Source: Anaeramoeba ignava BMAN (lineage: Eukaryota > Protista > Anaeramoebae). Taken from it: a stretch of DNA of 64,000 bases. The translations under genes were made by a program, and so were the position numbers. A model generated the notes under the pieces. It was not told where the DNA came from. It worked only from the letters and a program-made list of their open reading frames with translations, and made no database searches. Shown piece after piece: positions 10,670 to 54,995 of this stretch (position 1 is its first letter; each line of letters begins with the position of its first letter). The stretch covers positions 120,062 to 184,061 of the forward strand of contig JAPDFW010000113.1 in NCBI GenBank assembly GCA_028826165.1, written 5' to 3'.

Positions 10670-13600
10670 TTAGAAAAGTCCAACTTTTTTCTTCGCATTG
10701 TTTTGTTTCCATTTAGGAAGAGCTTCAAAAGCAGATTTATCCATTGCGAAAACCTTCTTAAATTCCTCATCACTCAAATAAGTTTCAAGCCTAGTTGGGT
10801 CAACACCAACGGGTAACGGTTTCTTCTTAAGAGCAGCAAGAGGGAATACTTTGATGTCATATTTCTTAAGTTCTTGTCTGACATCTTGAGGACCAGTTCC
10901 CATCATTGCAGCAAGTTTTCTTGAGTACGGATCAGTACCCATTTTTTTACGGTCCCAACCAAGGAAATGAGCAGTAAAAAGTTGTGGTTCGTGACCGGCA
11001 ACAATTCTCAAAATGGGGGTATCTGGTGAACGACCATCAGGAGCGTTTTTGATATAATCAACGGCTGTTTCCATTGCTTTTTGATGTTCATTTGGATTTG
11101 ATTCACCGCCGATCCAAATGAAGATTTCGTTGTAAGTATCAAGCAAATAGACATCGTCATTTGTCAAGTCGTCTTGCGAGAAATTGAAGACTTCTTCGAC
11201 TCTGAAGACGCCAGTTGCGTCGCTCATGTGGAACAAACGGGGATCAGCAGGGTCGTCTTGCAAATAGTCTTCATCAGCATATTTGGTTTTTCCGCCGAGT
11301 TTGTCCCAGAATTCTTGTGGTTCGCTGCCTTCGTTAACGATTTGCTGTTGACGAGATCCTTTGACAATGTCTCCGATATGTTTTCCTGTTTTCTTCTCGT
11401 CTTGGTTCGATCCTTTGCCGTACCAGACGTATTGTTTGTGTGGGATGTTGAGAATAAACACATCGCCAGAGTTTAATGATGTTGCTTTAGCTTCCACTTC
11501 AGTTCCGCGAGTGTTGATTGCATTTGTTCCTCTGACATGGAAAAGTTCAATCTTTGATTCGTCGATTTTATCTGTATCGGTTTCCTTGAGGGTTTTGAAA
11601 CCGCTTGCCTTTCCTCCGGTTCTGACAACCATTTCTCCTTTGAAAAGACTTAAGAAATGGTTTGGTTCTTTTCCTTGAACAACACGCACTTGAACAGCGC
11701 ATCCGCCCATTGAATCGTCGAGTTCTTTTGTAAGCAAAGCAGATGCTCCCTTTTCATCTTGGGTGCTATCTCTTCCCTGCCAGAAATAAATGATGTGACT
11801 CTCGCGACCGTGATCCAAATATGTGTATAAGATGATATAACTGTCGCCGCCCCAGAATTGTCCGTATGTTTTTGGATCAACATCTGCGCGCTTGAAATCT
11901 TCCACTCGCCAGATCTTAAGCTTGCCGCTTCCGTCGTCAACCATTCTTTCTTTGTATTCTTGTTTCTCGTGCATTTTGGAAACATCGATTTTGGGCTGTT
12001 CTTGTTTGACAGCAATTCTTCTTTCAGGTCCTTGTATGTCTTTTGGCATCTTAACTTTCCTCCAATCGGGGAATTTCTCAATAAACAAGGGTGTTTCTCC
12101 TCCTTCAATAACACGTGTGACTGGAGTCCAATTGGGTCGATTATTTTTGGTTAAAAATGCAACGGCGTTTTTCATTGATTCCCGTTTTTCTTGATCTGTT
12201 GAGCCTTTTCCAATCCACACAAAGATCTCAGATGTGCAATCTAAAATGAAACAATCCATTGTGTCCAACATTGCTCTTTTAAGTGGTGCGCGTGCTTCTT
12301 CAGTGATTTTGAGCTCGCCACTTTCATCGCAAACTCGGTATAAAACAATTTGAGAAAGTGCCATTTTTTCGAAGGCAAGATCATCACCGCCTTCTTCAGC
12401 AGTCTTAATTCTTCCCTTTCCGCCAAGAGCTTTCCAGAACTCATCGGGTTCTTTTCCTTGTTCGATGATTTGTGCTTTTGCTCGTCCGCCTCTTTCGTCG
12501 TCTTTGATTCTTGAAACAACTTCTAATCCTTTCATTTTTTCCATTCGATTTGCTTCTTTTCCGTTCCATTGGAAGATCTCAAGTCCGCAATCAAGAACAA
12601 AAACATCTCCTGCGTTTAATGATTGATGTGTAACTGGTACTTGTGTGCATCTTACATTTCTTCTTCCTTTTAAGTGAAGCAATCTTGTTTTGTAAACATC
12701 TCGTTCTACATGTCGGAATCCTGAATCAATTCCACCTTCTTCGTATTCAATTCCTCCTTTCCAAAGTGCGAGAAACATTTCACTTTCATGATGTTGAACT
12801 TCACGATCTATTATAAAAATTAAAAATTATAAATAAAAATATAAATTATAAATAAAATTATAAATTAAATTATAAATTAAATTATAAATAAAATTATAAA
12901 TAAAATTATAAATAAAATTATAAATAAAATTATAAATAAAATTATAAATAAAATTATAAATAAAATTATAAATAAAATTATAAATAAAATTATAAATTAA
13001 ATTATAAATAATAAATAAAATTATAAATAAAATTATAAATAAAATTATAAATAAAATTATAAATTAAATTATAAATAAAATTATAAATTAAATTATAAAT
13101 AAAATTATAAATTAAATTATAAATAAAATTATAAATAAAATTATAAAATAAAATTATAAATAAAAATTATAAATTAAAATTATAAATAAAAATATAAATA
13201 AAATTATAAATAAAATTATAAATAAAAATTATAAATAAAATTATAAAATAAAATTATAAATAAAATTATAAATAAAATTATAAATAAAATTATAAATAAA
13301 ATTATAAATAAAATTATAAATAAAATTATAAATAAAATTATAAATAAAATTATAAATAAAATTATAAATAAAATTATAAATAAAATTATAAATAAAATTA
13401 TAAATTAAAATTATAAATTAAAATTATAAATAAAATAATAAATAAAATTATAAATTAAATTATAAATAAAAATATAAATTAAAATATAAAATAAAAATTA
13501 TAAATTAAATTATAAATAAAAATATAAATAAAATTATAAATTAAATTATAAATTAAATTATAAATAAAAATATAAATAAAAATATAAATAAAAATTATAA

Positions 13601-14871: not shown

Positions 14872-17800
14872 ATGAATGAATTAATTCAAGCAATTCAAAA
14901 TAATAATATAAAATTAATTAAACAATTATTAAAAAATTCAGAAATTGATTTAAATTTTCATTTTAATGAAAATAATGTAAATTTAAACTTGAAAAACACA
15001 ATTTTAAACACAAAATTTACATTTATAAAATGAATTCTTTAAAAGAATAACAGTTTTTTACATATTGCTTGTTCTCATAATGCTAATTTAAAAATTCTTA
15101 AAATATTAATTGAGAAAGGTGCTGATGTTAATTTAAGAAATGTTGCTATTCTTTTTATCAAATCATTTATAATTAAATTTATAATTAAATTTATAATAAA
15201 ATTTATAACAAAATTTATAATTAAATTTATAATTATATTTATAATTAAATTTATAATTAAATTTATAATAAATTTATAATTAAATTTATAATTAAATTTA
15301 TAATTAAATTTATAATTAAATTTATAATTAAATTTATAATTAAATTTATAATTAAATTTATAATTAAATTTATAATTAAATTTATAATTAAATTTATAAT
15401 TAAATTTATAATTAAATTTATAATTAAATTTATAATTATATTTATAATTAAATTTATAATTAAATTTATAATTAAATTTATATTTATAATTAAATTTATA
15501 ATTAAATTTATAATTAAATTTATAATTAAATTTATAATTAAATTTATAATTAAATTTATAATTAAATTTATATTTATAATTAAAATTTATAATTAAATTT
15601 ATAATTAAATTTATAATTAAATTTATAATTAAATTTATAATTAAATTTATAATTAAATTTATAATTAAATTTATAATTAAATTTATAATTAAATTTATAA
15701 TTAAATTTATAATTAAATTTATAATTAAATTTATAATTAAATTTATAATTAAATTTATAATTAAATTTTTTAATTAAATTTATAATTAAATTTTACAATT
15801 AAATATATAATTAAATTTATATTTAAATTTATAATCAAATTTATATTTAAATTTATAATCAAATTTATAATTATATTTATAATATTAAAATTTATAATTA
15901 AATTTATAATTAAATTTTATAATTAAATTTATAATTAAATTTATAATTAAATTTATAATTAAATTTATAATTAAATTTATAATTAAATTTATAATTAAAT
16001 TTATAAATAAATTTATAATTAAATTTATAATTAAATTTATAATTAAATTTTTAATTAAATTTTTTTGATTTATAGAATGTAAATTTATAAATTTAAAAAC
16101 TTTAAATTTCTAATTATTTATTTAAAAAAAGAGAGTAAATTTGAAAATAAATATTATTTTTATTCTATATTTTTATTCCATATTTTTAGTCTGAAACACC
16201 ACTTTATATAGCTTGTTTATTTGGTCTAAAATTAAATTGTCTTAAATTCTTAATTAAATCTGGTGCTGATATTCATGCTCAAAATGTATATTTTATCATA
16301 ATTATTTTTATTTTTATTTTTATTTTTATATTTATTTTTATTCCATATTTTTTTAGAAAGTAAAATTATTAAATAAATCTTAATTTCCTTTTTTTTTTCT
16401 TATTAAAAATGAATTAGGATGTAAGTTATTTTATTTTCTTGATAAAATTTTTTTTATTTTTTCTATATTTTCTAAATTAAAAAGAAAGATACACCATTAC
16501 ATGGTGCTTGTGAAAGAGGAGATTTAGATGCAATCAAATTCTTGATTGAAGAAGGTGCAAAAGTTAATATTAAAAATGTATAAAAAAAAAAAGCAAAATT
16601 CATTTCATTATATTTATTCAAAATAAATAAATAGGATGTATTTCATTGTATTTTAGTTTAGTTTATTATTTAATTTTGCTAAAATTTATTTATCTAGTGG
16701 GTTGGTTATTCTTTAATTTATTTATAATTCAATAATAATCTTATTTGCATTTTTTTGTTAAAAAAAAGGATGAAATTCCTCTTCATTATTCTTGTACTTC
16801 TCTCTTAAAATTGGAAATTATTCAAATACTTTTAGAAACAGGATCAGATATTCTTTCACAAACTGTAATGATTTGAATAAAACATTTCAAAAACATTTCA
16901 ATTCAAAAATATTTCAAAAACAATTCAAAAACAATTCAAAAACATTTCAAAAACATTTCAATTCAAAAATATTCCATTTCAAAAATATTTCAATTCAAAA
17001 ATATTTCAATTCAAAAATATTTCAATTCAAAAATATTCCAATTCAAAAATATTTCAATTCAAAAACATTTCAATTCAAAAATATTTCAATTCAAAAATAT
17101 TTCAATTCAAAAACATTTCAATTCAAAAATATTTCAATTCAAAAATATTTCAATTCAAAAATATTTCAATTTAAAAACAATTCAAAAACATTTCAATTCA
17201 AAAATATTCCAATTCAAAAATATTTCAATTCAAAAATATTTCAATTCAAAAATATTCCAATTCAAAAATATTCCAATTCAAAAATATTTCAATTCAAAAA
17301 TATTTCAATTCAAAAATATTTCAATTCAAAAATATTTCAATTCAAAAATATTACAATTCAAAAATATTTCAATTCAAAAACAATTCAAAAACAATTCAAA
17401 AACAATTCAAAAATATTTCAAAAACAATTCAAAAACATTTCAATTCAAAAATATTTCAATTCAAAAATATTCTAATTCAAAAACATTTCAAAAACAATTC
17501 AAAAATATTTCAATTCAAAAATATTACAATTCAAAAATATTTCAATTCAAAAACAATTCAAAAACAATTCAAAAACATTTCAAAAATATTGATTAATTTA
17601 AATTAATTTAGAAAGTAAAAATTTTATAAATTATTCCTCAAAATAAAAATTTATCTTTTTTTATTTGGAAAATTTATACTTTTTAATTTAGTTTGTAATT
17701 TTCAAATAAGAATTCTCTTTTTCTCTTCAAAGAAATGAAAAATTGTTTTGATTAAATTTAATCAATAAAATTCAAATCTATATTTATAGCAAGAAACACC

Positions 17801-19411
17801 ACTTCATTATGCTTGTGTAAATAGAGCATCACATGAAATTGTTCAATTAATGTTAAATTTTGGTGCAAGTGTTTCAATTGAAAATGTTCGATTAATTTTT
17901 ATAATTTAATAAACGAATTTTAATATTTATTAAATTATATATAAATAAAAAAAAAGAAAGTAAATTTGGAAATTTGGAAAATATTTAATGATTGAAATTA
18001 TGTTTTTTATTTTTGATAGAGAGTATTTATTAAAAAACAAAAAATCATTTAAAAACTTTTTTTTAATTTTTTTTTTGTATAAAATTAAGCTTTATACTCC
18101 TCTTCATTATGCTTGCTTAAGTGAATGCGAATATCAAGTTATTGATCTTTTAATAAAAGCAGGTGCAAATGTTAATGCTAGAAATGTAAATATTTCTGGT
18201 TTTTAAAGCTTTATTTTATCAAAATAACAATATTTTCAATAAATAAATAAATAGGATGTAAATTTATTCAATAAATTGTTTTTTTTTTAAAAATTAAAAT
18301 TAATATATTTAGCAAGTAATTTAAATAATTTCATATTTATATTTCAAATTTATATTCATATTTAAATTCATAAAGGAAATAACTCCATTACATTATGCAA
18401 TTAAAAAAGAAATGAGTTTTGAAGCAATAGAATTATTACTAAATGCAGGAGCAGATATTAATATTTTAAATGTATTGATTAAAAATTAATTCTCAATAAA
18501 AAATTGTTTTAAATCAATTTAAATTTGTTTTGAATATCAGAATGTAATTTAATCAAAAAGTAAATAAAAATAAAAAAATTAAAATCATTTTAAAAAGAGA
18601 GTAAAATAAAATTAAAATTAAATAAAAAATAATTTATTCAGAATTGAATTGAATATTATCTTAGGGAGAAGAATTAGAACCACTTCGTGATAATGTAAAA
18701 GAATTATTCCAATATCATTCCAGTTTCGAAGAAGATTTCACAAATTTATTTTCACGACAAGAATTTACAGATGAAATAATTCAATGCAAAAATGGAGAAT
18801 TTGGTGTTCATAAAATGATTATCAATTACAGAATTGGGGAGAAAAAATACCCACAAATATATCAAGTTCTGAAAAATTGGGATAAAAAAAAGGCGATGAA
18901 ATTTTTTGAATTTTTATATGGAAATTGTGTTAAAGCATTTACACAAGAAAACGAAATACAAAATCTTTTGAAAGAACTTTCTTTTACAGAATTTAAAAAT
19001 AAAAGAGGAAAAAAAGGATTAATTGATGATTTTGAACGAATGATTCAAGATGAAAATTCAAAAGATTTTCAAATTATTGTTGAACAAAAACCTATTCGTG
19101 TTCATAAAATTGTTTTGATAGCAAGAAGTGATCTTTTTAGAGGAATGTTTCTTAATGTTCAAGATGATTCCAATCAAGTAAAAGATTATAGTGGCAAATC
19201 TTATGAAACCATAAGAACTTTAGTTAATTTCTTTTATAATGATCAACTTCCTGATTCAGTTTCTAATCAAGTTGTAACGGAATTATTGGATTGCAAAGAT
19301 TTTTATCAGTTAAATCAAAATACTATTTTGAATTATAAATTGAAAAATATAATGAAGAAAAGAAAAATGACAAAAAATTTAGCAGAAATTGAGAATTATG
19401 AAAAGATTTAA
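14872..19411 (+). CDS. Ankyrin-repeat plus BTB/POZ protein (~520 aa, 23 exons including 14 three-nucleotide microexons)
   Basis: Exons: 14872-14976, 15046-15141, 16076-16078, 16132-16134, 16190-16285, 16357-16359, 16418-16420, 16485-16577, 16635-16637, 16698-16700, 16769-16864, 17612-17614, 17692-17694, 17790-17885, 17957-17959, 18020-18022, 18090-18185, 18255-18257, 18313-18315, 18376-18471, 18541-18543, 18598-18600, 18665-19411. All introns are GT-AG and phase 0. Repeats read TPLH/Y..GADVN. The last exon carries two BTB-like segments (FTD..GVHKMII; SKDFQIIV..IRVHKIVLIARSDLFRGMF). Confidence 0.9.
15165..16065. repeat. 12-bp (ATAATTAAATTT)n minisatellite in ankyrin-gene intron 2
   Basis: Direct tandem repeat, AG-free on the sense strand. 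Confidence 0.95.
16076..18600 (+). other. Seven pairs of single-codon microexons (N,R / K,D / D,W / K,F / K,R / D,Q / N,R)
   Basis: AG|NNN|GT occurs exactly twice after every ankyrin exon. Including both restores the consensus 7-residue spacing between GADVN and TPLH. Confidence 0.88.
16878..17590. repeat. 16-bp (ATTCAAAAATATTTCA)n minisatellite in an ankyrin-gene intron
   Basis: Direct tandem repeat between donor 16865 and acceptor 17611. It is the source of spurious ORF 16792-17475. Confidence 0.95.
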
Positions 19412-19594
19412 TAAATAATAAAAAATAATAAAAAATAATTTGGAAAAGATTTAATATTTAATTTTAAATTTGTTTTATTTGTTAATGTCAAAAAAAAATG
19501 TCAAAAAAAAAAAAAAATCATTCACTATAAAAAAACCGAAAAAAAAATTTTTTTCATTTTTCATTTTTCATTTTTTTTTTCTCTTATTTATTTA

Positions 19595-22063
19595 ATGACA
19601 ACATCACAAATCCAAACAACACCTAAAATCCAAAAATTAACGCAAGAAGTAATAAATCGAATAGCAGCAGGAGAAGTAATACAAAGACCAAGTTCAGCAA
19701 TAAAAGAATTATTAGAAAACAGTTTAGATGCGAAATCAACAAGCATCACAATACAAATCAAAGAAGGGGGATTAAAACAGATCAGAATAATAGATAATGG
19801 ACATGGAATTAAAGTAGAAGATCTGCCTCTTCTTTGCGAACGATTTACAACAAGCAAACTAAGAAGTTTTGAAGATCTTCAACAAATTTCAACGTTTGGC
19901 TTTAGAGGAGAAGCTCTTGCAAGCATTAGTCATGTTGCCCATATTTCAATTATAACAAAAACTCCTGATTCTTCTTGCGCTTATAAGGCTTGTTATGCTG
20001 ATGGCGCTTTATCTCCTTGCGGAAGAGACGGAAATAAAGACCCTCAGCCTTGCGCAGGAACAAATGGAACTCAAATCAATGTTGAAGATCTTTTTTATAA
20101 TGTTCTTACAAGAAAACGTGCTTTTGGAAATGCAAACAAAGAGTTTCGACGAATTGTCGATGTTGTTTCTAAATATTCTATTCTTAATAATCATGTTTCT
20201 TTCACTTGCAAAAGACACGATCAAAAATCTCCAACTTTGCATACTTCCCAAACAACTAATCGCACAAATACTATTCAAAACATTTATGGAGCAAATTTAG
20301 CTTCTCAACTTATTACTTTTAGTTTCGAAAATACTGACTATCCCCATTCAGTAGAAGCTATTATTTCAAACACTATTTATAGCATGAAAAAATTTCTTTT
20401 TATTCTCTTTATCAATAACAGACTTGTTGATAATGTTTCTTTGAAAAAAGCTGTTGAATCAGCTTATTCTGCTTATTTGCAAAGAGGTGTTCATCCTTTT
20501 GTTTTTCTTTCTATTAAAATCCCTCCAAATAATTTGGATGTTAATATTCATCCAACAAAAAAAGAAGTTCGTTTTCTTCATGAAGAAAAAATTATCGAGT
20601 CAATTCAAGAACAAATTATGAAAAAATTACAAGAATCTTCATCTTCTAAAACATTTATAACAACATCTCAACTTTCATCAACAAAATTATCTTCTCAAAT
20701 TTTAATTATATCAGATAAATCACAAACAAAGAAAACACCTGTTAAATCTATTATTGAGAAGAATTCAAGTTTACCATTTGAAAAAGTGAAGAAGAATTTG
20801 AATGAAAATGAAAATGAAAATGAAAATCAAATTAAAAATACAAATAATGAAAATAATGAAAATAATGAAAATACTAAAAAAGGAGCCTATCAATATCAAA
20901 GAGTTAGAGTTGATGATACAGATCAAACTCTTGATAAATTTATTCTTTCTGAAAGGATTCATAATAAAGAAAATAATAATAAAGAAAATAAAAATAATGA
21001 AAATAAAAATAATGAAAATAATAATGAAAATAATAATATGGAAATTGAATCTATTGATTTACTTGTTGAAAGTCAAAATTCTGAATCAATTACAAAAAAT
21101 TCAACAAATTCAACAATTTCAGATTTATCAATTTCTGTTGATGAAAAAGATAAAGATAAAAAGAAAAAAGATAAAAAGAAAAAAGATAAAAAAAAAGATA
21201 AAAAGAAAGATAAAAAGAAAAAAGAAGAAAATTCACAAATTTCTTCTAATAAAACATTCCTGAAAAAACGTAGAAAATGGAGAGATGTTCAACTCACAAG
21301 CATAAAAACACTTCGACAAGAAATCGAAGATAACAAACATGAAATAATCAGCGATATATTCAATCATCATGTATTTGTAGGATTAATCGACACAAGACAC
21401 GCACTAATTCAATACCAAACAAAATTATATCTAGTTGATGTATTTTTAACAACAAGAGAACTTTTCTATCAAAATATATTAAAAAAATTCTCAAACTTTT
21501 CAATCATAAAATTTGAAAAAGCACTTTCTTTAAAAGAATTAATATTTATAGCATTAAATAGTAATTTTAGTGGATGGAGTTCAGAAGATGGAGATAAAAA
21601 TGAATTTGCAGATTCTGTTGTTGATATTTTTCTCTCAAGAAGATTGATGCTACTTGATTATTTTTCAATTGAAGTTTCTCAAGAAGGAAATCTTTGTTCT
21701 CTTCCACTTTTGATTAATGATTATATTCCTAATTTTAGTTTTCTTCCTGTTCTTATTCTTCGTTTGGGAACTGAAGTTGATTGGAGTGAAGAATTTAATT
21801 GTTTAAAAATGATTAGCCATGAATTGGCTGAATTTTATGCTTTTAAAAATATTCCAAATTTTGAAAATCAAAATCAAATTCAAAATCAAATTCAAAATCA
21901 AAATCAATCAGATAAAATTTTATCACAAAAAGAAATTATTCAATCTCTTGTTTTTCCTACTTTTAAAAAGGGTTTTGTTGCTCCTCAATGGTTTATGACT
22001 GAAAGTGTTATTGTGGAAATTGCTTCTTTAGAAAAATTATATAAGATTTTTGAAAGATGTTAA
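19595..22063 (+). CDS. MLH1: DNA mismatch repair protein MLH1 (822 aa, intronless)
   Basis: INRIAAGEVIQRP, KELLENSLDA, GFRGEALASISHV, DVNIHPTKKEV, and the MLH1-specific C-terminal LYKIFERC. Confidence 0.97.
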   Translation: MTTSQIQTTPKIQKLTQEVINRIAAGEVIQRPSSAIKELLENSLDAKSTSITIQIKEGGLKQIRIIDNGHGIKVEDLPLLCERFTTSKLRSFEDLQQISTFGFRGEALASISHVAHISIITKTPDSSCAYKACYADGALSPCGRDGNKDPQPCAGTNGTQINVEDLFYNVLTRKRAFGNANKEFRRIVDVVSKYSILNNHVSFTCKRHDQKSPTLHTSQTTNRTNTIQNIYGANLASQLITFSFENTDYPHSVEAIISNTIYSMKKFLFILFINNRLVDNVSLKKAVESAYSAYLQRGVHPFVFLSIKIPPNNLDVNIHPTKKEVRFLHEEKIIESIQEQIMKKLQESSSSKTFITTSQLSSTKLSSQILIISDKSQTKKTPVKSIIEKNSSLPFEKVKKNLNENENENENQIKNTNNENNENNENTKKGAYQYQRVRVDDTDQTLDKFILSERIHNKENNNKENKNNENKNNENNNENNNMEIESIDLLVESQNSESITKNSTNSTISDLSISVDEKDKDKKKKDKKKKDKKKDKKKDKKKKEENSQISSNKTFLKKRRKWRDVQLTSIKTLRQEIEDNKHEIISDIFNHHVFVGLIDTRHALIQYQTKLYLVDVFLTTRELFYQNILKKFSNFSIIKFEKALSLKELIFIALNSNFSGWSSEDGDKNEFADSVVDIFLSRRLMLLDYFSIEVSQEGNLCSLPLLINDYIPNFSFLPVLILRLGTEVDWSEEFNCLKMISHELAEFYAFKNIPNFENQNQIQNQIQNQNQSDKILSQKEIIQSLVFPTFKKGFVAPQWFMTESVIVEIASLEKLYKIFERC

Positions 22064-33634: not shown

Positions 33635-33784
33635 TTTTTTATTATTAAAGATATTTAGAAAAAAAAAAATAAAAAAAATAATTTTTTTCAGATTTATTTT
33701 TCGAATTTTTTTTCAATTTTTTTTCAATTTTTTTTTATTTTTTTTTCATTTTTTTTTTCTTTGAATTTCAAAATTAAAAAAAAA

Positions 33785-36700
33785 ATGTCACGTTCAATAA
33801 ACATTTATGAAGCAATTAAACAAAATCAACTGGAAAAAATTAAAGAATATATTGAAACACTTGAAAATCCACTTCTTTCAAATGTGTTAAAATTTGCCTT
33901 ACAACAAAATCCACAAAAAGATATCATTTCATTACTCACAAAAAAAGGGGTTAAGAAGGAAAAACAGGAGAGTTTCGAAACAAATCTTTTACACATTGCT
34001 TGTGAAAAATCAGCGGATATTGAAATCATTCAGATCTTAATCAATTTGAAATATGACCCAAATGGAGAATCTGTATACACAAAACAAACGCCATTGCATG
34101 TCGCTTGCAAAAACAAAAACTCATTATCAGTCATCCAGCTCTTAGTTCAACAAGGGGCGCAGATAGATAAGGTGGATATCAAAGGTTATATTCCTGTTTT
34201 TTATGCGCTTGAAAACTTAGATCTGGATGTGATTAAGTTTCTCTTGCAAAATTTGGATTGTCTCCCTCAAAACAAACCAAATCACATGAATATCCTTCAT
34301 TTTGCTTTGTCAGAACACCCGGCACATATTGATCTAATTGAGTATATTTTGTCCTTTCATGTTAATCCCAACGACCAAGATTTAAATCTCAAAACTCCGT
34401 TGCATTATGCGTGTGCTAATGCTTGTGAAGCTTCGGTTTTAAATCTATTGATAGAAAAAAGTGAAATTGCTGAAAACAATTTCTTAAAAAATAATGAAAA
34501 TTTGCAAAAAAACGAAAATTTCCAAGAACATGAAAGACAGGTAAAAATAGTCAATGTTTTTGACATCAACAAGCAAACACCTCTTCATGAATTATGCATA
34601 AATAAATGCACAGAGGATAGATTAAGTGTCTTGTTAAAGGCAGGAGCAGACCCCAATATCCAAAATCCAAAAAAAGAAACAGCTTTCCATTTGGTTTTGC
34701 AACACAATCCAAGTCTTGATGTTGTGAAAATGTTTATTGGAAGTGGCGCATCTCTAGAAATTCAAGATTTAGATGGAAAAACTCCTCTTTATGAAGCAAT
34801 AGAACACAATGCAAAAGACGAAGTTGTTTACGAACTCATTTCCAAAACAAAGAATTTCAAAATTGCGGAAAAAAGAACAAACACATCTTTACTTCATCTT
34901 GCGATCCAGAAATCAAGAGAGCCAGAGTTGATCAAAATGCTTATTGAAAAGGGAGTAGTAATTGATAGCGAAGACTCGATGAAAAAAGCACCACTTCATT
35001 ATTGTATCGAGCACAAAAAAAGAGAAGAAGTTGTGGAAATTCTTTTGGCAACAAAAACAGAAAAATTAAATTCAGCAGATCTTCAAGATAACAAGACAAT
35101 CCTGCATTTGTTGTGTGAGTTCTCAACAAATGCAGAATTAATCAAAACGCTAATAAGCAAAGGAGCTGATCCATTGGCATCTGATAATGCAGGACAAACT
35201 CCTCTTCATCTCGCTTGCATAAATAATCCTTCTGCCCAAGTTATTAATGTTCTTCTTCAATCTGGGGCAGATCCTAAAACAAAAAATAGACGAAGACAAC
35301 TTCCCTTGCATTTAGCACTTGAAGCAAATGCTGGTTTTCATGTTTTGGAAATTCTTCTTAAATCGGAAAAGTTTTCTGGAAGCAAAGAAATTCACAGTTT
35401 TGATTCCAAAAGACAAACCCTTTTCGAAATTGTTTTGCGCAGAAAATATCCATTGCCAATAATCAAGCTTTTTATTGACAACGGGGTAATGAGTGAGAAG
35501 ATAATTGGAAGAGGAGGACAAACTTATCTTCATTTCGCTTGCTTTCCTCCAATTGATCCAGAAATTATCGCATTGCTTTTAAAAAAAGGAGCTGATCCTG
35601 ATGCAAAGAATAATATGGGGAAAACCCCTTTGATATTGGCATTTATGAACAAGGCAAATAAAGAGGTTCTTCATCTTCTTGTAACCGAAAATAATTTTGA
35701 CACTCCAACAAATACAGGAAAAACACCTTTGTTTTTTGCAAGTGCAAATAATAACATTGAAATGATGAAATATCTCATCTCAAAAGGAGCGCAAATTCAT
35801 GCTCACGATAAAAAGGGAAGATCTGTGTTTCACTATGCAATCAAAAAAGGAGCAAAAGTTGATGTGATTCAACTTCTTTTGGAAAACAAAGCAGATCCAA
35901 ACGAAATTGTTAACAACATGACAGCTCTTGAATATTGCTTTGTAGGCAAAGAAAGTCCAGTCCAAGTTGTAGAGCTTCTTCTGAAAATTTGTAGATTCGA
36001 TTCATCTATTCACAATCCACTCAAAAAGGCTTTTATACTTGCTCTTGAAAAAAACGCCTCTTTTTTCAACTTATGTGCGCTTACAGAAGCAGGAATTGAT
36101 CTCGCAACATTTAAAAACAATTACTACGATTTTAATCATTATATTTTCAGCAATAATTTTGACCAGTTCAGACTTGCACTTTCTTTTGATTTTAATATTA
36201 AAATTGGACAATACACAACACTTAGTCGCTTATACCAAGAAGTAATGCAGGATTTCTATTCAATAATGGATGATTTTGAGCGTGTTTTGGAAAGTGGTGA
36301 GCTTTCTGATTTCAACGCTGTTTGTTCCGATGGTTCTATTCCTGTTCACAAACTGATTTTAAAAAACCGCATTTGTTTTCCTGATGAAAAAATCACTTTT
36401 GAAAAGGTTCTTGATATTCTGCATTCTGGATTGTGCGATTTTCAAATGAATGAAGTGCGTCCGTTTTTGAGGTTTATTTATTCAGGATATATCGATCACA
36501 AAGACGATCAATACGAAGAAAAAATTATGAAAATTGGATCACTTTTTAACCTTCAACATGATTGGTTTGTGAAAAAAAAGGGAAGGCATGGACTTCTTAA
36601 AGATATGGAAAGACTTTGGAATGATGATGAAAGTAAAGATTTTGTTGTGGTTGTTGAAGATGAGAGGATTAGACTTCACAAGGTGATTTTGTTGATAAGA

Positions 36701-36937
36701 TCAGAACTTTTTAGAGGTCTGTTTTTATCTGTTGATGATCCTTCTAATCAAGTTAATGAATATTCAGGAAAATCTATTCAAACAATCAAACAACTTTTCA
36801 AATTTTTTTATCTTGATGAACTTGATCCTGTTCTTCCAATGGTTGTTGTTTCTGAGATTGAAGAAGCACTTGATTTTTATCAAGGAAATGAGAAGACATT
36901 AACCTGGAAAATTTTATATAATGAGAAGTGTGATTGA
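33785..36937 (+). CDS. Ankyrin-repeat (~20 repeats) plus tandem BTB/POZ protein (~1050 aa, intronless)
   Basis: First ATG at 33785. Many TPLH..GADPN repeats. BTB-like segments LSDF..IPVHKLIL and SKDFVVVV..IRLHKVILLIRSELFRGLF, homologous to the C-terminus of the 14872-19411 gene. Confidence 0.93.
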   Translation: MSRSINIYEAIKQNQLEKIKEYIETLENPLLSNVLKFALQQNPQKDIISLLTKKGVKKEKQESFETNLLHIACEKSADIEIIQILINLKYDPNGESVYTKQTPLHVACKNKNSLSVIQLLVQQGAQIDKVDIKGYIPVFYALENLDLDVIKFLLQNLDCLPQNKPNHMNILHFALSEHPAHIDLIEYILSFHVNPNDQDLNLKTPLHYACANACEASVLNLLIEKSEIAENNFLKNNENLQKNENFQEHERQVKIVNVFDINKQTPLHELCINKCTEDRLSVLLKAGADPNIQNPKKETAFHLVLQHNPSLDVVKMFIGSGASLEIQDLDGKTPLYEAIEHNAKDEVVYELISKTKNFKIAEKRTNTSLLHLAIQKSREPELIKMLIEKGVVIDSEDSMKKAPLHYCIEHKKREEVVEILLATKTEKLNSADLQDNKTILHLLCEFSTNAELIKTLISKGADPLASDNAGQTPLHLACINNPSAQVINVLLQSGADPKTKNRRRQLPLHLALEANAGFHVLEILLKSEKFSGSKEIHSFDSKRQTLFEIVLRRKYPLPIIKLFIDNGVMSEKIIGRGGQTYLHFACFPPIDPEIIALLLKKGADPDAKNNMGKTPLILAFMNKANKEVLHLLVTENNFDTPTNTGKTPLFFASANNNIEMMKYLISKGAQIHAHDKKGRSVFHYAIKKGAKVDVIQLLLENKADPNEIVNNMTALEYCFVGKESPVQVVELLLKICRFDSSIHNPLKKAFILALEKNASFFNLCALTEAGIDLATFKNNYYDFNHYIFSNNFDQFRLALSFDFNIKIGQYTTLSRLYQEVMQDFYSIMDDFERVLESGELSDFNAVCSDGSIPVHKLILKNRICFPDEKITFEKVLDILHSGLCDFQMNEVRPFLRFIYSGYIDHKDDQYEEKIMKIGSLFNLQHDWFVKKKGRHGLLKDMERLWNDDESKDFVVVVEDERIRLHKVILLIRSELFRGLFLSVDDPSNQVNEYSGKSIQTIKQLFKFFYLDELDPVLPMVVVSEIEEALDFYQGNEKTLTWKILYNEKCD

Positions 36938-47343: not shown

Positions 47344-49921
47344 TTATTTAAAAATATTTTGAAAATTGATTTTTTCCCAAATATGTTCAATTTCCTCAAG
47401 AATTCGTTTCAAGAAAAATCTAGCGGTTGAGTTGTTAATTGAAATGGGTCTGTAGTTTTTGATTTCTTCAGGGTTTCCTTGTTTGTAGATAAAGATCATC
47501 CTTCTTTCTTGTATATATTCTATTATCTCATCATTTGGGTTACTTATCCATTTTTTGAACATTCTATTGATCGATTTTAGGAATTCTTGATATCTTGAGT
47601 CTGTTTCATTTATGTAGGGATTTTTGTACATGTCAATCTTATCATAATCGCAAGTTGAGTTATTTTTACATGTTTTGATTATTTTGCTTAATCTCTCAAG
47701 TGGAAATAATAGATTCAATTCTCTTGTGTCTTCCAATATTTCAATATTGGAGGTTTTAATTTTCTCAATTGTGATTTGTGAGGGTAGGAGTCTAATTGAA
47801 TTGATCATTTGTTGGAAATCTTGTTCCATTTTGGGTGTACCTAACACTACTCTTGTTTTCTTTTGTGTGATTCTTTTTATCTCAGCCCAGTAGTTCAATT
47901 CATTTCGATTATCAATTTCAATTCCCTTCATTGTTTTCTTCCATTTTTTATTCAATAACTTTTTCCAATTAAATTCTTTTTCTTCAAGAAAATTGTGGAG
48001 TTGATAATCAAGTTCACTTTTTGTTTCAATATGAATTGTATTCTTTTTTCTGAAAGAATTCTTCATGTCTTTTATTATATTTGTAGACAAAACTAGTTTT
48101 GAAGATGGAAATGCTTCTTCTTCCATTTTTTTTATGATTTTATTTTGAAATTCCTCTTGGGTGGGTTGGTAATATTGTAGTTGAGTGGTAATTGGAGTTT
48201 TGAATGAGATTTTATTCAGGAGCATTTTGTGATCAGACAATTTCTTGGCTGTTGTATCTATTATTTGGGAATTGTTTATTTCTAGTTCATTATTAACACA
48301 GAAATGATCGATATTTCTGGTTCTCGATATGGATTCATTGGGGATTATTTTGAAATTTTGGATTGTAATTTGTTTTTCTATTTCCTCTTGTGTTAAATTA
48401 AAATCCCCTCCGATGATATATTTCTCTGTTTGTATATTTTGTATTATTGCTTGTAGTTTTCTGAGCATTTCTTTTTGTGTTTTTTGTCTTAGATAACAAT
48501 TAATGATATGGAGATCAGTAATTTTTATATGTAATATATCTTGATCTTCATGTTTGATTTCTTCAAAAAATTTTTTGAATTCTTTTCTTATTGCAATACA
48601 TAACCCACCTTTAGATTTCTTTTCTCCATAAACTTCCTTTTTTAGATTTCTTTTCTCCATAAGCTTCCTTTTGGAAACTTTCGAATTTTGTAAAATATAT
48701 TCTTTTCTTTAAGTGAGTTTCTTGAATTAAGACTATTTCAATTTTTTGTGATAGCAAGAGTTGTTCCAATTCTTGTGTTTTTCCTAGTTTGAGAAGTCCA
48801 TTTATGTTTATAGAAGCAATGTTGGTTGAATATTCCTCAATTAGATATCTCTTTTTTCCTTTCAGTTTCTCTAATAGATTTTCATCAGGGTCGAGTAATT
48901 TGATTTGGATACTAGAAGGAATTCTTTCAATATTCTGTTTACATTCATCAAATATAGTTTGAATCATTGCCTTTCTATCCCAAATTTCCATTTTATGTCC
49001 ACCCTTTTGGATCATTCTCAAGACATCCCAATTCTGAATAGCTGATCTCGTTTCAAAAATATTCAAATGAGGTTTCTTAATTACAATTTTATTTGAGTTT
49101 TTGATTTTGATGATTTTCTTTTGGTTAAGATCTGTATATTCTTTAGAATTTTTGTATTTAATCGTTCTCTTTAGAGTGGAATCAATTTGCCATTCATTTT
49201 CTTGTAATTTTTGTATTATCTGATTTTGTAATTCTTGAATATTTCTTTTTGGAAGAGTATTGTATTCTTGATATGTTTTCAAATAAGTGTAGTTGGTCGA
49301 TTTAAGTAAGAATTCTCGGAGATCAGCTTCGATTATCTTGAATTTATGAAGGTGATTTATTTCTTTGAAAATTATTCCTTTGATTTCTTCAGTAACGTAG
49401 TTTAGCTTTTCTTTATTAGTAATGAGATCATTTTCTTTGTCTAGTTTCAAGATAATGGGAGTTTTGAGCCAATTTTCAGAATCGAGTGTCTTGTAATGAA
49501 TTACCTCTTCTTGATCAAATTCTTCATTATGCGTTAAATTAACGGTTTCTCTTTCTTCTCTTAAGTAGAAATTTTCATCTTCGCTCTCTTCTTCAATAAA
49601 TTCAAGATTGTCTTCTTCAAAAGATTCAAAAAATTCACTGAAGTCATCGGATTTAGGATTTGAGGTGTCTATATTTCCATTGATAAGTTTCTTAAAATGA
49701 TTTGAGATTGAAATTGAAATCTTGGTTCCATTTCGGATCACTCTCCTTCTCTCTTTTGCAGCTTTTCGAGGTTCTTCAACAAGGAAGTGTCCTTGACTAT
49801 TTCTTTCATATTGGGTCCAATATCCTTTTATTGGACCATAATTCTCAATTAATCTTAAAATGAGATTTAAAGAGATAAAGGGGGAATCTGCAAAAATGAA
49901 CAGATTTCCCCAATTGACCAT
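47344..49921 (-). mobile_element. Degenerate non-LTR (LINE-like) retrotransposon: N-terminal RRM-like region, APE endonuclease, truncated reverse transcriptase
   Basis: APE motifs IASININGL, LIQETH, GGLCIAIRK, IINCY, IGGDFN, IDHF, LSDH. RT start IFIYKQG..KNYRPISI. The frame is broken by a 31-bp tandem duplication at 48610-48671, and the element stops before YxDD. Confidence 0.88.
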
Positions 49922-52665: not shown

Positions 52666-54995
52666 TTAATTTAAGTTTTTCCAATATAGAAGTTTTCGAT
52701 AAATCATCCGATAAGTATCAATCAATAATCTGATGTTATCCATCTTTTTTTTCTTTTCTTTTCTACTTTTCAGATGAGTTGATGCAGAGATTATTTTATC
52801 AATCTTCTTTTTTTGGTTATTTAGTTCTTCTTTGATTTCTGAAATTTTGTTTTTTTGCTCACTCTTTTCATTTTCATGAAAAATTGAATAGATTTCCTTT
52901 CTAAATTCTGAACCATCTTTAGCAATAACTTTTTTTCTCATTTTTTCTAATGTCCATTCTCGAAAAATCCTGCATCTTATAAAAAAACAAATAAAGGATC
53001 CACAATCATCTCTATTTTTTTGGATACTTTTTTGACCTTCAAATACCTCAACAAAACTGAAAATCAATAATTTTGCAATTTTTTCTCCTAATTTTAACAT
53101 TGAAAAATATCCCTCAAAGCTATTAAAATATTCTACCCTTTTCATTTCAAAATTAACAACAAAAATTACCCAATGTAACCCTGTTATAACAGGTAAAATG
53201 ATCCATTGAACAGTTGGATACAGTTGAATCTTTTGGAGTACATCAATTACATCTTTTGGTTGTTGACTGGGAACAATAATAATATCTTCTCTTTTGAAAT
53301 TACTTTTTTCCAAAATCAAAAATTGATCAATATCAAATTCACTTAACCAATTTTCATTCGAATTGGGATTCATAATCCTTTGTCTCCAACCATGAAGATT
53401 TGCAAATGATTTGGTAACCTTTTCTTCATTTTTAATCTGCTTTAGCTGTTGGGTTATATCTTCTCTCTTGATTTGATATTTAGATTCCTTATCTTTAACT
53501 AAATCTGGAGATTGAGTATTGTTTTTTGAAATAGAATCCTTTTTCTTTTGAGTTTTCCTTCTTTTTGGTTCTTGACTTTTTGTTTTCAGTTTCTTATTAG
53601 AGTTTTTTTTATTATTTTTCTCATTTTCTTTCTTTTCTTTCTTTTTCTCTTCCTCTTCTTCATCATTAATGTTTCTTTTAGATCTTCGTTTCTGATGAGT
53701 TTTCTTCTCGAAAAATCCTATCATTTCTTCGAATTCTTCCACAGCTTTTTCATCTATGGTATGAATAGAATCACAAATCACTCCTGTTTTTCTGAAGGAA
53801 GAAGCAATTTTTGTTGAATTTAAATTATTCCAGCTTTTTAGTGCATTTTCTATTACATCTTCTCTTCTTAAAATACCCATTTCATTCATTTTGGGTAGAA
53901 TATTTGACCGATAATTGATTTTGAAAGGACCAAAAACGCTCTTGTCTAATGGTTGTAAGAGGCCAGTCATATGAGAAGGTACATGTATGATTCGAATTTT
54001 GTTCTTTTCACAAACTTTTAAAAAGTCCTTATCTCTATGGGCAGCAAAACGATCCAGGACTAAAATCGAATCAGGAATATCACAATTGTTCTCTTGCTTC
54101 ATTTTATCCTTAATATGAGGAATTAACACCTCTTCCAACCATTTAATCATTATGAAAGTATTTGACCATCCTGAATTTGAATTCAAAAAATAGCATTTTG
54201 AAAATTTTTTTTGTAATTGAGGGATCAATCTTATGCCACTTTTTGCTTTAATAATGAAGGTAGGAATTATTTTCGTACCATCTGCAGCAATTGCAGCAAT
54301 CATTGTAATAGTCTGTTTTGTATTATGAACACATATTGATTTCCCATTTTTACCTTTGTTTCCAATTGAATTGGAAGTAGTAAAAAATTGTACATTAGTC
54401 TCATCAACGTTGAAAATGAAGGAATGATCAATCTTAAATTTGGAAGATTCATGATTTATAATTCTTTTTGTTTTACACTCTTGCCAAAATTGTTGAGCTG
54501 TTTGTTTTGGTGAAATGTGACTGGTCCATTTATTCACAAGTTTATTTTTTCTAAAAACAAAGTTATTCCTTTTCATGAATCGGTATGGCCAATGTATAGA
54601 AAGAGGTTTTTGATTTTTGCCAATAAACATTTGATTAGCTAACGCTCTTATAGAGGATGGAGAAACAATGAAATTATCTAAAATTTTTGGTTCAGGATCT
54701 TACTTATTTGGTTTTCTTGTTCAAAGGTAAGTCGACAACATCTTTTTTGATTAGCAATTTTTCTCTTTTCATTTGAAGTTGATCCCATTGGATTTCCTAT
54801 TTTATATCCCTGATAACGTGAATAAAGAGTTTGATATGGAATATTCAACTTTTTACTTAAATGACTGATTACTCCATATGGACCTTCTTCAATTTGTTTA
54901 TACAATGAACACCAATCTACTTTTTGTTTTGGTGGTTCAAAAGAGCGACGAGGAGAAGACACTAAACAAGAATGACTTTTTGAAGGATTTGACAT
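52666..54995 (-). mobile_element. pogo/Fot1-like (DDE_1, DD35D) transposase with HTH domains and a C-terminal Ulp1-like (C48) protease domain; one frameshift near 54680
   Basis: HTH KKLNIPYQTLYSR and CENP-B-like LTFEQE..IRALA..W.YRFMKR. Catalytic NVDET, LVLDRFAAH, LQPLD with 35 residues between the last two Asp. Ulp1-like WLSEFDID, LPV..LHW, YFNS, QKNRDDCG. Confidence 0.88.

Follow-up and report, generated by a model that had tools for sequence, protein, structure and literature searches.

Exons the size of a single codon have a precedent among ankyrin genes. For a truffle, Tuber melanosporum, a NACHT-ankyrin family is described as carrying tens of alternatively spliced exons of codon size (Iotti 2012, PMID 22289772, as cited in PMC4986451, PMC3689799, PMC9815663, PMC10197012, and PMC13449251). 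Here, we looked into an expressed ankyrin-BTB gene built of repeated modules, located at positions 14872 to 19411 on the plus strand of a 64,000-nucleotide stretch (the window) of Anaeramoeba ignava BMAN (contig JAPDFW010000113.1, positions 120,062 to 184,061), itself part of a 42.8-Mb, very AT-rich genome. Each of its seven ankyrin exons is followed by two exons of 3 nucleotides (nt), and at four junctions the assembled transcript contains these triplets, which restore the canonical loop length. An earlier note on this DNA, made from the sequence alone, knew of no description of serial tandem 3-nt exons in this arrangement; as the citing papers present the truffle work, the lack of a precedent is not supported. 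On the same accounts, the gene resembles the Tuber family but is not a member of it: both lineages have an expanded ankyrin family and many 3-nt exons, which in Tuber reportedly affect the C-terminal recognition domain, but the Tuber genes encode fungal NLRs, whereas the Anaeramoeba gene is an ankyrin-BTB gene without NACHT from an unrelated lineage. In addition, the Tuber exons are described as alternatively spliced, whereas full inclusion alone was seen in Anaeramoeba, in contigs and assembled proteins.

Small exons and one-repeat exons are also known from other eukaryotes. Plant microexons of 1 to 15 nt are described as real, often constitutive, and mostly missed in annotation, and consecutive removal of their flanking introns has been proposed (PMC8831610); that account gives one adjacent pair (5 and 12 nt) and otherwise scattered single cases, unlike the paired 3-nt exons found at every repeat in Anaeramoeba. 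The leucine-rich repeat (LRR) genes of Tetrahymena, with arrays of exactly 90-bp exons, are like Anaeramoeba in having one repeat per exon in a fixed phase, duplicated through a very large protist family, but they differ in phase (phase 2) and repeat type, and the available part of their description mentions no microexons (PMC6564038). We found no paper on microexons, or on ankyrin introns, for Anaeramoeba in a search outside which most subscription papers lay, and the Anaeramoeba genome paper does not mention microexons, ankyrin, or BTB. Schistosoma micro-exon genes are made up mostly of exons of 6 to 36 nt, which form most of the protein, and Dscam draws on mutually exclusive spare cassettes. 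Both systems are like Anaeramoeba in their runs of small frame-preserving exons and offer variation through the choice of cassettes; the 14872-19411 gene differs from Dscam in that it has no more cassettes than positions, exactly two per junction.

The complete gene model comprises 23 exons, with a coding sequence of 1563 nt and, upon translation of the joined exons, an open frame of 520 amino acids. This is the predicted mRNA length of the earlier note, once a plain 69-nt GT-AG intron without a microexon (14977 to 15045), which splits the first coding stretch, is counted. Ahead of that intron lies exon 1 (14872 to 14976; 35 codons), the N-terminal capping repeat, which agrees with GenBank model P0001. 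The seven ankyrin exons (96, 96, 93, 96, 96, 96, and 96 nt, all phase 0) and the introns that flank the triplets (53 to 95 nt, plus two long ones of 934 and 747 nt) have the sizes and phase that had been proposed, and all 14 AG-NNN-GT triplets stand where they had been placed and are sense codons. The first ankyrin exon (15046 to 15141; PF00023, E value = 1.3e-7) is followed by the 934-nt intron (15142 to 16075), an AT-only tandem repeat expansion with no AG or GT inside, and by AAT (Asn, 16076 to 16078) and AGA (Arg, 16132 to 16134). The second (16190 to 16285; E value = 1.6e-6) precedes AAA (Lys, 16357 to 16359) and GAT (Asp, 16418 to 16420), and the third (16485 to 16577; E value = 1.5e-8) precedes GAT (Asp, 16635 to 16637) and TGG (Trp, 16698 to 16700); these three pairs were assigned from sequence and statistics. 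The fourth, ankyrin-like exon (16769 to 16864) is followed by the 747-nt intron (16865 to 17611), also a tandem-repeat expansion, and by AAA (Lys, 17612 to 17614) and TTT (Phe, 17692 to 17694). The remaining ankyrin exons, each matched by Pfam, lie at 17790 to 17885, before AAA (Lys, 17957 to 17959) and AGA (Arg, 18020 to 18022); at 18090 to 18185, before GAT (Asp, 18255 to 18257) and CAA (Gln, 18313 to 18315); and at 18376 to 18471, before AAT (Asn, 18541 to 18543) and AGA (Arg, 18598 to 18600). The terminal exon (18665 to 19411; 248 codons and the stop) encodes a BTB/POZ domain (PF00651, E value = 7.6e-17) and, in a database protein search, is 100% identical to KAJ5068816.1 of A. ignava.

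The protein itself looks ordinary, and the peculiarity is confined to the structure of its gene. The Pfam search returned Ank and BTB only, with no NACHT domain; PF00023 was matched by six of the seven large ankyrin exons, and 16769-16864 had no match of its own. We take the product to be, probably, a putative Cullin-3-type substrate adaptor, with a BTB domain and an ankyrin binding surface. This domain content (Pfam PF00023/PF12796 with PF00651) is greatly expanded in the genome (2370 candidates, 150 scored matches). The host is an anaerobic metamonad whose introns have a mean A+T content of 91.9% (PMC11550330).

The triplets stand out from their surroundings. Each of the seven inter-exon spans contains four to six AG and two to eight GT dinucleotides, yet exactly two AG-NNN-GT units, so that the gene has no spare cassettes to choose among. 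Across 3000 dinucleotide shuffles, the mean was 0.6 units in total and the maximum 5, and two per span was never reached. Units of 3 nt with AT-rich surroundings were at background in the rest of the window (three matches), similar to other lengths. We reject chance motifs on the shuffles and the window background, and we also reject a single 6-nt exon or shifted splice sites, as no hexamer of the seven is found as an AG-6-GT exon or can be assembled from intron ends.

We then compared the model with transcripts. The public run X1 contains 0.32 of the words of 16050-19411, a stretch whose exonic share is 0.319, and its contigs are spliced, with exonic sequence only. They were aligned to 17596-19470 of the window and reach 19365 within the terminal exon; the pairs 16076/16132, 16357/16418, and 16635/16698 lie outside that stretch. 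In a 1352-nt contig, exon 17790-17885 corresponds to 516-611 and exon 18090 starts at 618, exon 18376-18471 corresponds to 720-815, and base 18666 corresponds to 823. Each of the four 3' junctions therefore has 6 extra bases, in the register of the model with 5 nt added. One junction reads GAT and CAA (18255, 18313), and the loose end of the contig before 17790 reads as the final 24 nt of exon 16769-16864 followed by AAA and TTT (17612, 17692), the 747-nt intron having been removed. At the other two junctions, the pairs 17957/18020 and 18541/18598 were identified by length, from 6-base gaps at 612-617 and 816-821. These results indicate that the triplets are exons, as had been proposed: the 6 bases are present at four junctions, the letters agree at two, and direct joining of ankyrin exons, set beforehand as the refuting observation, was not seen at any of the four. 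The contig offset is compatible with the three 5' pairs without proving them. No skipped junction occurred in the contigs over 17596-19470, assembled contigs being prone to drop rare isoforms. At 18829, the contig has a synonymous C>T difference (Tyr) from the assembly, an allele or strain difference.

Paralogues gave equivalent results. No transcript-derived database protein was found for the 14872-19411 gene; in the EukProt transcript protein P0151, the two-residue inserts QE, KV, YM, and MF equal microexon codons in locus L046, and in P0175 the inserts RG, NN, and KS equal microexon codons in locus L028. The transcript proteins of these two paralogues thus have the microexon residues at 7/7 junctions mappable to DNA, and their GenBank counterparts do not; P0175 has four further two-residue inserts and P0177 has one, all beyond the DNA compared. 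Wherever a transcript protein and a GenBank model differed by two residues (12 cases), both residues were included.

That gene prediction would pass over the triplets had also been anticipated, and KAJ5068816.1 lacks all 14 residues, with six two-residue deletions and, at the 16635/16698 junction, one false 16-residue insert instead. In homologous database proteins, the length of the loop spacer is bimodal (57 cases have 5 residues and 90 have the canonical 7), and including the triplets takes it from 5 to 7, as expected from the view that repeats without them are two residues short. Many public Anaeramoeba ankyrin models lack their hairpin-tip residues and need correction.

The two residues are those that the earlier note had read: they form the xx of D/N-x-x-G-x-T-P-L-H, at the tip of the ankyrin hairpin. 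In an AlphaFold model of a transcript-derived paralogue (predicted local distance difference test score [pLDDT], 97.6), which replaced a low-confidence single-sequence fold, they lie in the loops between repeats, and a transcript protein aligns with ankyrins and designed ankyrin repeat proteins (DARPins) in the PDB. It is established that the inter-repeat loop belongs to the binding face (PMC4986451). The further claim that the microexons encode exactly the variable binding-surface residues, each specificity-determining one on its own exon, was overstated. The tip positions have variabilities of 2.9 and 3.5 bits (3.1 and 3.3 bits in intron-free paralogues), and several positions inside large exons are as variable or more so, at 3.3 to 3.8 bits; the microexons thus hold two of several variable positions, and a DARPin-like surface wholly on microexons was not found. 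Diversity at microexon positions was not raised relative to intron-free paralogues in a weak test on 35 versus 78 motif-selected repeats.

We extended the analysis to the family and the genome. Twelve paralogues contain 119 microexon codons without a stop, against 12% expected, the commonest residues being Asn, Lys, Asp, Tyr, Phe, and Ser. Their junctions have no microexon (26 cases), one (13 cases), or two (53 cases), and the median intron span rises in step (75, 149, and 218 nt). Across 20 loci of 9 kb, 184 three-base units were counted, whereas most other unit lengths gave about 10. Introns are short, with a median of 71 nt, 83 to 99% A+T, and almost devoid of internal AG and GT, and microexon donors have A at +3/+4 at frequencies of 0.90/0.84 versus 0.77/0.67 for plain donors. 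Genome-wide, a strict tandem pattern gave 1156 matches for 3 nt, part of them long arrays rather than ankyrin pairs; 4 nt gave 131 matches and 6 nt gave 176, many of which are simple repeats; these two lengths served as controls in place of the reversed pattern, which was uninformative because the reversed motif is common. The counts suggest, at the level of sequence, an excess of about 1,000 tandem 3-nt pairs. The earlier note had named an equal frequency of AG-NNN-GT in introns of non-ankyrin genes as a refutation; the WD40-BTB paralogues L043 and L050, which have about one repeat per exon and phase-0 introns, contain no 3-nt exon in 13 introns. Within the window, an intron-free ankyrin-BTB gene (33761 to 36937, plus strand; 1058-codon frame) has full-length loops and serves as an internal control, the intron-free genes carrying the two loop residues in frame.

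The layout is shared with a second species. In both strains of A. flamelloides, the same pairs are found (E,F; S,Q; C,D), and the same gene also has intron-free junctions that keep the two residues. Six of the six clear microexon codons between short introns (candidates S/Q, C/D, and F/R) are identical in the two strains. As A. ignava and A. flamelloides share 37% average amino-acid identity (PMC11550330), the layout is old.

Taken together, we consider it likely that both codons are normally included and that the short AT-rich introns are removed one at a time. The absence of spare cassettes from the 14872-19411 gene and of any skipped form from its contigs makes normal inclusion of both the most likely outcome, and the shortness, A+T content, and near lack of AG and GT make recognition across the intron possible. 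A module would then consist of a 93- to 96-nt exon for the helix-turn-helix body and two one-codon exons for the hairpin-tip residues, in phase 0. Each short intron would be recognized across its own length and flanking introns removed in succession; each triplet would thereby be attached to a neighbor first, and no 3-nt exon would need to be recognized alone. The microexons would be retained because the loop requires their residues. The module may be older than the divergence of A. ignava from A. flamelloides and have spread via repeat and gene duplication, with intron-free paralogues and junctions arising by precise intron loss or never having gained introns. Both stepwise gain and precise loss are in keeping with junctions that have 0, 1, or 2 units and, now and then, a 6-nt unit.

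Several points weigh against this reading. Three of the seven pairs were not observed directly in RNA; the data are assembled contigs and transcript-derived proteins, which drop rare isoforms, so that skipping could hide; the library type of X1 is unrecorded; and the RNA data behind X1 and EukProt may be the same. A BTB-region tree, in which the state of most rows was taken from loop spacing, interleaves microexon and intron-free genes with 2/66 branches well supported, and it gives no order of intron gain versus loss. The third ankyrin junction of locus L044 (G000:C124:14600-23600, minus strand) has four well-spaced 3-nt units (Ser, Gly, Phe, and Gly), and long cassette arrays lie elsewhere in the genome, so the family may use alternative splicing.

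These last observations lead to the view that splicing itself diversifies the protein: with variable inclusion, the tip of each repeat would have 0, 1, or 2 residues (up to 4^7 forms in this gene), and paralogues with spare cassettes would choose among codons. The Tuber precedent, as cited, speaks for it, as do the placement of frame-neutral units at the binding surface, the four units at the L044 junction, and the arrays of about 40 intron-codon copies at C1:409-413 kb. We nevertheless regard it as unlikely, as the contigs show no skipped joint, both residues are included in 12/12 two-residue differences, the 14872-19411 gene has no spare cassettes, and microexon donors are at least as near consensus as plain ones. 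It is doubtful that one-codon exons form a splicing-level library, in which spare cassettes or arrays write different residues into binding loops; were it true, a symbiont-bearing protist would possess a natural DARPin-like repertoire convergent with truffle NLRs, and genes like 14872-19411 would represent a fixed two-cassette state.

Variation might instead arise in the DNA, with tip codons swapped as cassettes by duplication, conversion, or new AG-NNN-GT units and a faster change of specificity as the result. Young arrays do show duplication of intron-plus-codon units followed by codon divergence, and junctions with 0, 1, 2, and 4 units coexist with 6-nt units, but tip diversity does not exceed that of intron-free paralogues and the clear microexon codons do not differ between the A. 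flamelloides strains, which makes such an evolvability device very improbable. That the signal is an artifact, whether chance AG-NNN-GT or 6 bases that stem from a single 6-nt exon, from shifted splice sites, or from a processed DNA copy, is scarcely credible: the unrecorded type of run X1 and the omission of the triplets from GenBank models would permit it, and it is largely refuted by the shuffles, the contig letters, the lack of an AG-6-GT source, the absence of stops, and the paralogue transcript proteins.

If normal inclusion of both codons holds, consecutive 3-nt exons are in routine use, with about a thousand tandem pairs in one 43-Mb genome, and a spliceosome can build loops codon by codon; Anaeramoeba would be a clean natural system for studying intron definition and the sequence in which introns are removed. 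The truffle parallel suggests that ankyrin binding loops gained codon-sized exons twice, and RNA reads that already exist would then allow a direct test between adaptive diversification and neutral intron gain.

Other loci of the genome contain related structures. The L044 junction, where two residues are expected, is the best candidate, from its sequence, for cassette choice or a longer loop. Candidate 6-nt microexons occur at ankyrin junctions in L037 (4710, plus strand), L047 (4972 and 5060, plus strand), and L040 (5934 and 6562, minus strand) and are possible intermediates between zero and two one-codon exons. Long ankyrin-BTB genes include L040 (G000:C112:79400-88400, minus strand), with about 36 three-base units, and L032 (C65, minus strand), with about 32. 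The array L051 (G000:C1:409200-413300, minus strand) is made up of about 40 nearly identical copies of an intron of about 75 nt, between which stand single, differing codons, with part of the donors decayed; it follows a BTB and coiled-coil frame (L053:463-1539, minus strand; frame break near L053:460), and no transcript-derived protein was found for its gene. A pattern search returned more long runs of consecutive 3-nt units at G000:C1:942331-942795, C1:1058078-1073176, and C2:7158-9498, all on the minus strand, and in the last of these the introns are unique and nonrepeated.

Other genes and frames lie in the window. An intron-free MutL-family (MLH1-like) gene (19595 to 22063, plus strand) starts 183 nt past the ankyrin-BTB stop, and the other neighbors are villin (10670 to 12778), a dyskerin-like gene, an aminotransferase, Sir2, and topoisomerase I. 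Two overlapping frames at 47344 to 49921 (minus strand), one with a non-LTR retrotransposon-type endonuclease, are probably an element fragment, and at 52666 to 54630 (minus strand) a DDE_1 (pogo-type) transposase frame is fused with a Ulp1 (C48) protease domain.

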